Virus record (IMG/VR): IMGVR_UViG_3300050014_000823
Location: 1 to 64,000 of that record
Length of the DNA stretch: 64,000 bases
Reading direction: 5' to 3' (one strand)
Shown here: positions 1,380 to 5,489 of the stretch, piece after piece
How the letters are laid out: each line of letters opens with the position of its first letter
Numbering within the stretch: the first letter of the stretch is position 1
Position numbers and translations under genes: made by a program
The notes under the pieces: generated by a model
What the model was told of the DNA's origin: nothing
The model's database searches: none
Seen by the model: only the letters and a program-made list of their open reading frames with translations

Positions 1380-1452
1380 GCTTCCGTGACTGAATGGTTA
1401 AGGTGTCAGACTCTAAATCTGATTTGTGCAGGTTCGATTCCTGTCGGAAGTA
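1380..1452 (+). tRNA. amber suppressor tRNA, anticodon CTA (1413-1415)
   Basis: acceptor GCTTCCG/CGGAAGT, D loop with GG, anticodon stem TCAGA/TCTGA with loop CTCTAAA, T arm GCAGG-TTCGATT-CCTGT, discriminator A; no encoded CCA. Confidence 0.92.
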
Positions 1453-1473
1453 CAAAAATAATTGATAATTTGC

Positions 1474-1522: not shown

Positions 1523-1559
1523 ATATCTACGACAATTATTAACAATTAAATTTACGATT

Positions 1560-1910
1560 ATGAAGTAGGTTAAATTAGTAACAGTAACAAGAAAAGACCT
1601 GGATGCAGGTTACCAATTAGCGCAGACTATACACAGTAGTAGTCGATTTGCGTATCATTATCCCGAACTACATCGGGAATGGATTGAAAAATCCGAATAT
1701 GTTGTATCACTTTCCGTGGACAACGAAGAATCCCTCAATGACCTTTATAACAAATTAAAAAGCAATGGTGCTATTGTTGTGGCTTTTCATGAGCCAGACA
1801 TACAGGACCAGTTGACTTCTATTTGCTATTATGGTACGCCAGTAATGCGTAAGCATACGCAGAAGTTAGACTTAGCACTCAAAGAAGTTGAAGTCGCAAC
1901 TAAAAATTAA
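1560..1910 (+). CDS. peptidyl-tRNA hydrolase Pth2-like protein with in-frame TAG at codon 3 (116 aa on readthrough)
   Basis: ATG AAG TAG GTT AAA... gives MK*VKLVTVTRKDLDAGYQLAQTIHSS...WIEKSEYVVSLSV...FHEPDIQDQLTSIC; RKDL..G..AQ..H and EPD....T motifs of PTH2-like proteins; in frame with track ORF 1716-1910. Confidence 0.85.
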
Positions 1911-4577: not shown

Positions 4578-5489
4578 ATGGCAAAAAAAGAGAACGATTT
4601 AGTAAAAGAAGTATTAATGGAAAATCAAGAAAAAAAGGAAAAAGAAAAGGACTACAGTGCTGTTACAGGCAAGGGTGGTGGCTTACGCTTTAACAAAGGT
4701 AAACTGAGATACGACTTGGTTGAACCACGAGCATTTGAAGACTTCGTTCAGGTGCTTACCGATGGTGCAAACAAGTACTTCGACAGAAACTGGGAACGTG
4801 GTTTATCATGGACCTCAGTTCTGGCTTCACTTAAAAGGCACTTGGCTGCCATTGAAAAAGGTGAAGACTATGATAAGGAAAGTGGTCGCTTACATATTGC
4901 TCACGCAGCTTGTAACGTACATTTTCTCAATGCATTCTACTATAGCTTTCCACAGGGTGACGACAGACCTAAAAGGTTCTTAAACATCCCTAAAATCGGT
5001 CTGGACATTGATGGAGTGCTCGCTGATTGGACAGGTGGATGGGCAAAAATTTATCCCGAAGTTTCAGCAACACCATATTCTTGGTATTTTGACAGAGTTG
5101 TTGGTAAGCGTTTCAAAGCAATGGAAGCTGCAGGAACTCTCGATGAATTCTATATGAATCTTGAACCTCTGATGCAAGCAAAAGACTTAACTTTCGAGCC
5201 ACACTGCTATATTACATCACGTCCTGTTTCACAAGAAATCTCAGAACAATGGTTGGATAAACACGGATTTCCGTCAAGACATGTTCACAGTATTCAGATG
5301 GGTGAAAGTAAAGTGGATGTAGCCAAAGCTGCAGGTGTTGAAATATTTATTGACGATTCATACGAAAATTTTGTTGCCTTAAACAACGCAGGTATATGTA
5401 CATACCTGTACACAGCATCTTGGAATACCAAACATGATGTTGGTCATCTTAGGCTTAACTCGCTGAATGACTTGCCGTTGCTGAAGTAA
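4578..5489 (+). CDS. dATP/dGTP diphosphohydrolase (DUF5664-like) fused to HAD 5'-nucleotidase (NT5C-like)
   Basis: GKLRYDLV..GANKY..RNWERG..SLKRHL...D.ESG.LHIAHAACN plus IGLDIDGVLAD..ITSRP..FIDD. Confidence 0.85.
   Translation: MAKKENDLVKEVLMENQEKKEKEKDYSAVTGKGGGLRFNKGKLRYDLVEPRAFEDFVQVLTDGANKYFDRNWERGLSWTSVLASLKRHLAAIEKGEDYDKESGRLHIAHAACNVHFLNAFYYSFPQGDDRPKRFLNIPKIGLDIDGVLADWTGGWAKIYPEVSATPYSWYFDRVVGKRFKAMEAAGTLDEFYMNLEPLMQAKDLTFEPHCYITSRPVSQEISEQWLDKHGFPSRHVHSIQMGESKVDVAKAAGVEIFIDDSYENFVALNNAGICTYLYTASWNTKHDVGHLRLNSLNDLPLLK

Follow-up and report, generated by a model that had tools for sequence, protein, structure and literature searches.

A leader stop codon and a suppressor tRNA gene precede a PTH2-like frame

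The window analysed here is a stretch of 64,000 nt with which a single virus contig of 299,144 bp from peat metagenomes begins (IMG/VR record IMGVR_UViG_3300050014_000823). At 1541-1910 on the plus strand it contains a PTH2-like gene, related to peptidyl-tRNA hydrolases of the Pth2 type, and upstream of it, at 1380..1453 on the same strand, a gene for an amber-suppressor tRNA. The PTH2-like gene opens with a leader (1560..1568, +) that consists of a start codon, one Lys codon and an in-frame amber stop (ATG 1560-1562, AAG 1563-1565, TAG 1566-1568), behind which the frame stays open until TAA 1908-1910. The open reading frame (ORF) of the PTH2-fold domain (1569..1910, +) comprises 113 codons plus the TAA and is in frame with the leader, and the product of readthrough has 116 residues. 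The earliest canonical in-frame start 3’ of TAG 1566 is GTG 1716; from there runs the 64-aa standard-code ORF (1716..1910, +; database entry P0082) that gene callers report. The motifs TRKDL and AQ..H fall between TAG 1566 and GTG 1716. An earlier note on this DNA, made from its letters only, had pointed out the ATG-AAG-TAG behind an A-rich initiation region and the position of the RKDL and AQ..H motifs between the TAG and GTG 1716, and both descriptions are accurate.

The initiation region at 1541..1559 (+; AACAATTAAATTTACGATT), directly ahead of ATG 1560, is A-rich and has no Shine-Dalgarno (SD) sequence. Genome-wide, SD-like motifs precede only 4% of the ORFs, and positions -14 to -10 are A-rich. 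In a genome of this kind the A-rich stretch at 1541-1559 fits a real initiation site. A CAATTAAA-type stretch was found again upstream of the gene in relatives. We rejected CAATTAAA as a genome-wide promoter or ribosome binding site motif, as it occurred only about twice as often as in the control and was not tied to starts.

The tRNA gene was called by ARAGORN with the anticodon CUA and matches Rfam RF00005 with 62.9 bits over its full length. Its cloverleaf and its stop-complementary anticodon (CUA at position 34) are those of a suppressor tRNA; CCA is not encoded and the first acceptor pair is G1-U72. It ends 106 nt before ATG 1560 and is the only tRNA that ARAGORN calls in the 299-kb contig. 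The complete relatives G002-G006 (327-363 kb) have 36-65 tRNA matches, arrayed next to the PTH2-like gene. Given this contrast, and given that the module is located 1.4 kb from where the contig begins, the region of the tRNA array is probably missing from the contig, and little should be made of the tRNA being the only one in it.

The leader stop is conserved and its identity follows the anticodon of the neighbouring tRNA

The first relatives came from a tblastn search, which at 30-46% identity retrieved the gene from five huge uncultured phages and from Tenacibaculum phage pT24, and all six of them begin with ATG, one or two codons and TAG, followed by ATT or ATA. Through scans of IMG/VR, of metagenomes from JGI and of GTDB genomes, and through contig look-ups, the collection grew to 101 distinct loci. 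The leader stop is TAG in 95 of the 101 and TAA in five, and only one locus (L137) has a normal ATG start without it; loci with a leader stop are called gated below.

The type of stop goes together with the type of suppressor. Of the 95 TAG loci, 71 have a tRNA(CUA) that ARAGORN calls in the fetched flank; mostly it shares the strand of the gene and precedes it by 0.1-1.3 kb. All five TAA loci (L024, L044, L075, L112 and L128) have a tRNA(UUA) beside them. Among the 76 loci with a suppressor in the fetched flank, no mismatched pair of stop and anticodon was present, neither TAG with UUA nor TAA with CUA. By our own arithmetic, which takes the assignment as random, such an outcome is expected once in C(76,5), about 1.8e7, trials (~5e-8). 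In the protein tree the TAA loci fall into at least two well-supported separate places, with five changes required on the best tree; their monophyly was not rejected (approximately unbiased test, p = 0.09). The five UUA tRNAs differ among themselves in their anticodon stems. More generally, the suppressor tRNA bodies comprise 83 unique sequences in 27 clusters at 80% identity, and the CUA tRNAs that adjoin the gene in relatives include homologous and non-homologous ones. This diversity implies that selection keeps a tRNA that reads the stop, and no particular tRNA or amino acid.

The codons on both sides of the stop indicate how the frame is entered. In 98 of the 101 loci no canonical start is present between the stop and the first strand of the domain. 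Directly behind the stop, 40 loci have GTA, 32 GTT, 23 ATT, three ATA and two GTG, with CAT at this place in the ungated L137; in the window this codon is GTT. As this codon drifts among synonymous Val and Ile codons, it appears to be read by elongation and not by initiation. Moreover, the long leaders found in part of the relatives (MKN..DGGYGS..) are conserved at the peptide level, which argues that translation must enter from upstream. A long-leader variant occurs in the same peat samples as the phage of the window. The readthrough that the earlier note had suspected is supported by the co-variation of stop and anticodon and by the drift of the post-stop codon, and initiation just after the TAG, which it had set beforehand as the case that would speak against it, does not agree with the GTT, GTA, ATT or ATA found there in 98 of the 101 loci.

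The frame behind the stop encodes a divergent Pth2 fold

The piece behind the TAG matches Pfam PTH2 (PF01981) over residues 2-75 with an E-value of 1.2e-5 and 25.9 bits, a weak margin over the cut-off of 23, and phrog_1866 with an E-value of 1.4e-13. An AlphaFold (AF2) model built on 21 relatives reached a predicted local distance difference test score (pLDDT) of 85.1 and a predicted template modelling score (pTM) of 0.78. With this model, the top 14 Foldseek matches in the PDB were all Pth2 structures, each with a probability of 1.00, with template modelling (TM) scores of 0.62-0.69 for the first 13; the Pth2 structures matched (TM 0.5-0.7) include 2zv3, 3erj, 1wn2, 1q7s and 1xty. The family profile matched the Pth2 of M. 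jannaschii (2zv3_A) with an E-value of 2.6e-7. On the strength of the model, the fold is that of Pth2. The profile search that the earlier note had proposed as a check on its Pth2-like gene and the structural comparison lead to the same assignment.

Residues 1-49, encoded between the TAG and GTG 1716, form strand 1 and helices 1-2 in the AF2 model and contain the family-invariant R8, D10, G14, Q19 and H22. Therefore the 64-aa ORF cannot be the whole domain, as the earlier note had argued for this short frame: strand 1 and helices 1-2 are absent from it. In what seems to be the place of the canonical D-x-G-x-T motif the family has an invariant E75-P76-D77, which aligns with K-D-A-G of 24bt_A such that E75 stands opposite that Asp, and the hhalign alignment ends just before the motif.

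The gated gene occurs in phages of very different base composition

At a threshold of E <= 1e-3 the family comprises 1,864 cluster representatives, of which 616 are left at E <= 1e-10. Among the best 150 representatives, 59 database proteins begin inside the domain, as expected if the stop blocks the gene caller, 35 have a leader with Q followed by I or V, 13 a leader with another Q and 24 a leader without Q, while 19 start at the first strand. Database proteins that read M-K-Q-V-K-L-V are code-15 renderings of the leader TAG. At the DNA level, seven of eight diverse representatives (26-66% GC) have the leader TAG, with a tRNA(CUA) near the gated ones wherever the contig flank allows. They include L252 (ATG ACG TAG, then ATG) and L253 (ATG ACG TAG ATT ...), which had looked ungated yet carry the leader TAG, and L251, an actinophage-like contig of 66% GC, reads GTG ACC TAC TAG, then ATG.

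In the Cluster C mycobacteriophages Myrna, Phabba, IkeLoa and HyRo the annotated start reads [G/A]TG TAG GTG, and a tRNA(CUA) lies 130-250 nt downstream in each of the four. A conserved promoter-like element, TTGACA...TACAGT/TACCGT, would put the transcript start approximately at the upstream ATG or GTG. With a GTG directly after the stop, independent initiation is possible in these phages. The tRNA beside the gene, which is annotated there as peptidyl tRNA hydrolase (L016/L230, L017/L229), is recorded as Ser in Myrna, as Arg(tct) in Phabba and as Pyl(cta) in IkeLoa and is not annotated in HyRo; ARAGORN reads CUA in all four.

Phage pT24 has a tRNA(CUA) 2.5 kb upstream of the gated gene. Its gated domain (L006 1447-2397) extends for about 190 further residues, with 314 codons after the TAG, and the pT24 record annotates only a coding sequence that starts inside the domain. 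Among the huge phages, LR756501 has two tRNA(CUA) 2 kb downstream of the gene, and in LR756504 the loop of one tRNA has 8 nt and includes UCUA. LR745206 (L157:1462-1541) and LR756502 (609697-609723, minus strand) share an odd tRNA-like gene with the anticodon loop CUUCUAAC, which contains CUA, a perfect 7-bp acceptor stem and an extended D region. ARAGORN makes no call for this gene, and in Rfam it reaches only 28.5 bits, as a weak match to tRNA-Sec. In these huge phages this gene may act as the amber suppressor.

Genes with a normal start serve as controls. None of the 25 tRNAs called in the 207-kb contig of L137 is a suppressor, and no suppressor tRNA was present in the 3 kb fetched on either side of L254, which also has a normal start. 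ORF295 of phage XacN1 is a canonical PTH2 (116 bits) without a leader stop. For XacN1, two tRNA(CUA) genes have been reported whose targets could not be found (PMC5852040). Since its Pth is canonical and ungated, our findings do not explain the XacN1 suppressors. A further candidate, Stenotrophomonas phage RAS14, was discarded, as the domain is fused there to the C-terminus of a 261-aa protein without a gate. The genome contigs that matched in searches for a host were phage contigs binned into metagenome-assembled genomes of Patescibacteria or archaea, which are uninformative on the host.

A probable two-part gate formed by the leader stop and the suppressor tRNA

These data make it very probable that synthesis of the PTH2-like protein depends on the neighbouring suppressor tRNA and that the two form a two-part translational gate. 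Ribosomes that initiate at ATG 1560 would encounter UAG at the third codon. There, tRNA(CUA) would insert an amino acid, and elongation would proceed into the PTH2-fold frame; if suppression fails, a release factor would terminate translation after fMet-Lys. Synthesis of the 116-residue protein would be conditional on, and scaled to, suppressor activity relative to termination.

Several points weigh against this dependence or against the function that it suggests. Readthrough of the leader stop is itself inferred, with high confidence, and that tRNA(CUA) is charged and decodes the stop in vivo has indirect support only, from the co-variation of stop and anticodon. Compared for its isotype with the 55 tRNAs of the relative G002, this tRNA peaked at 72% identity, to Glu, which is not decisive. 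No suppressor was found in the fetched flank of 24 TAG loci, most of which have short flanks, whereas several others belong to huge-phage genomes. In three of the huge-phage genomes that carry the gated gene, the candidate CUA tRNAs are all atypical. In L012, L013, L251, L252, L255 and the mycobacteriophages a canonical start directly after the stop could initiate independently. Furthermore, tRNA and gene are neighbours on the same strand and probably co-transcribed, so that a purely temporal gate seems redundant. Finally, the lysine of the G-K motif of canonical Pth2 aligns to Tyr15 of the gated protein. This position varies across the family (Y, Q, A, V, T, D or L), and hhalign to the canonical XacN1 PTH2 pairs R-G-K with A-G-Y. 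The G-K lysine, K18 in Pth2 of S. solfataricus, is reportedly catalytic. As the canonical lysine is absent, hydrolase activity, and hence the purpose proposed below, is only putative, and the chemistry of the gated protein may differ from that of canonical Pth2.

We also searched for an RNA element around the stop that could promote recoding. RNAalifold detected no consensus structure in 59 distinct relatives, and the window sequence alone folds around the stop into a weak A/U hairpin (z -2.5).

Alternative explanations of the leader stop

The earlier note had seen in the locus a two-codon minigene of the bar type, which unsuppressed would shed fMet-Lys-tRNA(Lys), a substrate of Pth and toxic if Pth is limiting, and suppressed would yield the hydrolase, and thus act as a feedback or toxin/antidote switch. 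The layout stands, as a start, one sense codon and a stop do occupy 1560-1568, and ATG plus one codon plus stop is the commonest leader, present in 65-67 of the 100 gated loci. The last sense codon is AAG in 51 loci and AAA in 17, and these two are the second codon in only 19% of the ORFs of this genome. Every leader is short, and short nascent chains are the class prone to drop-off that is known from minigenes and Pth. What the earlier note took as defining is not conserved, however: other leaders have 0, 2, 3 or 7-15 sense codons after the ATG, so that lengths range from ATG-stop to 15-16 codons with the long ones kept as peptides, and the last sense codon can also be ACA, TCG, AAT, CAC, CTA, ATG and others. 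Gating alone explains the co-variation with the tRNA, and the protein lacks the lysine of canonical Pth2. Toxicity of minigenes moreover requires high expression and limitation of Pth, which we count against this explanation. As an account of the locus it is therefore unlikely; a drop-off switch is possible for the two-codon majority, and it is not what has been conserved.

Very little favours an ordinary upstream open reading frame (uORF), in which case ribosomes would re-initiate on the main frame or start non-canonically at the codon directly behind the stop, and the suppressor would be incidental. Initiation behind the stop could draw on the ATG or GTG that directly follows it in the five L-numbered loci listed above, on the GGAGG/GAAGG 7 nt before the post-stop GTG of the mycobacteriophages, and on the ATT of other relatives, a known weak start codon. 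The GTT of the window and the synonymous drift at this position are at odds with it, and it leaves unexplained both the pairing of TAG with CUA and TAA with UUA and the peptide-level conservation of the long leaders.

Even less credit is due to the idea that the phage uses the TAG-reassigned code 15 and that the gene is one recoded gene among many. Recoding may occur among the huge-phage relatives, a second TAG lies within the gene in L003, and gene callers render the TAG as Q. In the contig, however, 410 standard-code ORFs cover 94% of the sequence, and 40 of them end in TAG, without any excess of extra tandem (back-up) stops behind these genes. Readthrough of TAG adds little coding sequence, and the PTH2-like ORF is unique in that a long coding stretch, of 49 codons, separates an in-frame TAG from the first start downstream of it. 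The complete 327-kb relative G002 behaves likewise, with 462 ORFs, 24 TAG stops, 55 tRNAs and a single suppressor, and the PTH2-like gene is again its top TAG-interrupted ORF. Of the features of a recoded genome, the phage-encoded suppressor tRNA is present, whereas many genes with in-frame TAG and a poor standard-code density are not found. The genome of the window uses the standard code except in the PTH2-like gene, and reassignment of TAG throughout it was rejected in view of the 94% coverage, the single clear TAG-interrupted gene and the likeness of G002. An ATG, up to five codons, a stop and then a long ORF make up a pattern met often in this genome (21 cases with TAG, 45 with TAA, 39 with TGA), and other early-TAG genes, at 182479 and 217486 on the plus and 278563 on the minus strand, were set aside as products of this pattern, which is common by chance.

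A holin-like ORF of 123 aa with two predicted membrane helices, located outside the window at G000:C1:130576-131724 on the minus strand (L144:2077-3225), also ends in TAG. Behind this stop follow 34 stop-free codons and then, in frame, a GH25 endolysin, so that suppression would fuse both proteins. This arrangement could be read in favour of code 15; the pair may be a second client of the suppressor tRNA, or the adjacency may be due to chance.

A gene that is intact except for a stop at codon 3 looks like a case of recent nonsense mutation. A pseudogene is nevertheless practically excluded, given that the stop is kept in 100 of the 101 distinct loci from many samples and that the downstream protein is under constraint. 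The same applies to an error in sequencing or assembly: at 1566-1568 no variant letter is present in the contigs, among them relatives, from four public runs, and the TAG is kept in relatives down to about 30% identity. Judged by this conservation, the leader stop is a design feature and not damage. Equally implausible is a tRNA(CUA) that acts as an initiator with UAG as the start codon of the gene, which is possible in E. coli with an initiator tRNA carrying the CUA anticodon and would suit the stop directly abutting the conserved domain in most close relatives, because the anticodon stem lacks the three G-C pairs, pair 1-72 differs with the type (G-U, G-C or C-G), the stop of L001 and L006 lies 10-15 codons ahead of the domain right after ATG-x, and the long leaders are conserved as peptides.

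Possible purposes of the gate

As a tentative proposal, which we consider possible although somewhat short of probable, the gate ties the supply of a putative peptidyl-tRNA (or N-acyl-aminoacyl-tRNA) hydrolase to the working state of the imported tRNA set, and with it to how much readthrough takes place. We prefer a purpose connected with this set, since the gene lies at the edge of phage tRNA arrays in the complete relatives and in the mycobacteriophages. The suppressor would serve as the reporter tRNA of the set, and the stop would sit in the leader so that the product of the off-state is a harmless di- to 16-mer.

A more doubtful reading takes suppressor and stop-gated gene together as an autonomous and mobile module with feedback, which would sense the state of readthrough in the infected cell and also set it. 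Its product could recycle or hydrolyse tRNA esters and in this way raise or cap suppressor activity. Such feedback cannot rest on recognition of the tRNA body, because the bodies vary.

Other features of the region

Just 3’ of the PTH2-like gene, within the stretch 1913-2010 of the window, the motif CAATTAAATTTA recurs before a second mini-ORF (ATG AAG CCA TAC TTA TAG, 1934-1951). A short hairpin (ATTCGCA/TGCGAAT) around 1985-2003 is part of the 1913-2010 stretch, a portion of which also occurs in the relative L010. Further downstream, at 4578-5489 on the plus strand, a 303-aa ORF combines an N-terminal dATP/dGTP diphosphohydrolase domain with a 5’-nucleotidase (NT5C) domain, and the same neighbour gene lies near the module in the relative L012.

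TnpB/IS605 OrfB-type genes are located at 6-326 of the window (+) and at G000:C1:281022-282359 (+; L145:523-1857). The copy in the window is a C-terminal piece with a Cas12f1-like TNB domain, cut by the contig start. Both genes end in TAG, and coding sequence goes on behind this stop in the same frame. Behind the full copy lies a fragment that matches a MazG-like pyrophosphatase, as if the element had inserted into that gene.

Relation to known systems and significance

In Streptomyces, the bldA tRNA-Leu(UAA), a developmental regulator of the host, gates TTA codons in regulators such as adpA. In both cases expression of a gene hangs on one tRNA that decodes an otherwise (nearly) unreadable codon; in contrast to bldA with its sense codon, the phages have a stop as the gated codon and a suppressor as its tRNA, which travels with the gene. 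The in-frame UGA of prfB (RF2), passed by +1 frameshifting, and the AUU start of infC are autoregulatory recoding sensors. As in these, an early recoding site in a translation-related mRNA would report the state of the translation apparatus. The product of prfB acts on the sensed event, whereas here the sensed event would be suppression by the tRNA, and feedback by the product is only conjectural. The bar minigenes of lambda are free-standing and not in frame with a conserved ORF. The window and about two thirds of the relatives share with bar the order of start, one sense codon and stop and a Pth-linked context, but the property conserved here is the match between the stop and the neighbouring suppressor tRNA, with leaders of 1 to ~16 codons. 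Synthetic AND gates have been built from the supD tRNA and amber codons in T7 RNA polymerase. As with those, output here would need both the mRNA and the suppressor tRNA; unlike the engineered gate, the present one is natural, conserved and linked in cis.

Compared to canonical Pth2 of archaea and eukaryotes, the gated subfamily has the same fold, the R-x-D-L and Q..H motifs and the place in or beside phage tRNA arrays, and differs in the absent GK lysine and apparently in having E-P-D in place of D-x-G-x-T. Pth2 has been described in jumbo phages (PMC7824862) and in or beside phage tRNA arrays (PMC5966550).

In crAss-like, Lak and other gut phages, 26-71% of the genes, chiefly late and lysis genes, contain in-frame stops, and the recoded stop has been proposed to regulate translation (bioRxiv 10.1101/2021.08.26.457843, PMC9523058). 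The shared element is a phage tRNA(CUA) that reads in-frame TAG while the host uses the standard code. The present case differs in that the genome itself is of standard code and has one clear client, which is translation-related and adjoins the tRNA, and in that the stop is fixed in an N-terminal leader and co-varies with the anticodon. Peptidyl-tRNA hydrolase is not mentioned in bioRxiv 10.1101/2021.08.26.457843, and no prior description of the leader stop or of its pairing with a suppressor tRNA was found in the literature searched. The occurrence of PTH2 in jumbo phages and in the tRNA arrays of Cluster C is already published.

For annotation of the family it matters that gene callers systematically truncate the gene or misplace its start, as in the 59 of the best 150 representatives that begin inside the domain. 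A divergent Pth2 subfamily without the canonical lysine also makes the substrate of these proteins a point of interest. Two sets of cultured phages carry the layout, Tenacibaculum phage pT24 and the Cluster C mycobacteriophages, the latter in M. smegmatis.

Why standard-code phages carry suppressor tRNAs is an open question, for instance in XacN1 (PMC5852040). In the phages studied here the suppressor is evidently required by a single conserved gene next to it, and the co-variation of codon and anticodon identifies this gene as its client. The pair would constitute a natural single-gene tRNA gate made from a stop codon, in a translation-related gene and in phages of very different hosts (26-66% GC). 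An in-frame stop that is under selection would hold the suppressor in place, which would link the gated gene to the origin of alternative phage codes. If the pair does act as a feedback module, it would give standard-code phages a standing reason to keep a suppressor tRNA and would be an anchor from which wider reassignment of stop codons in phages evolves.

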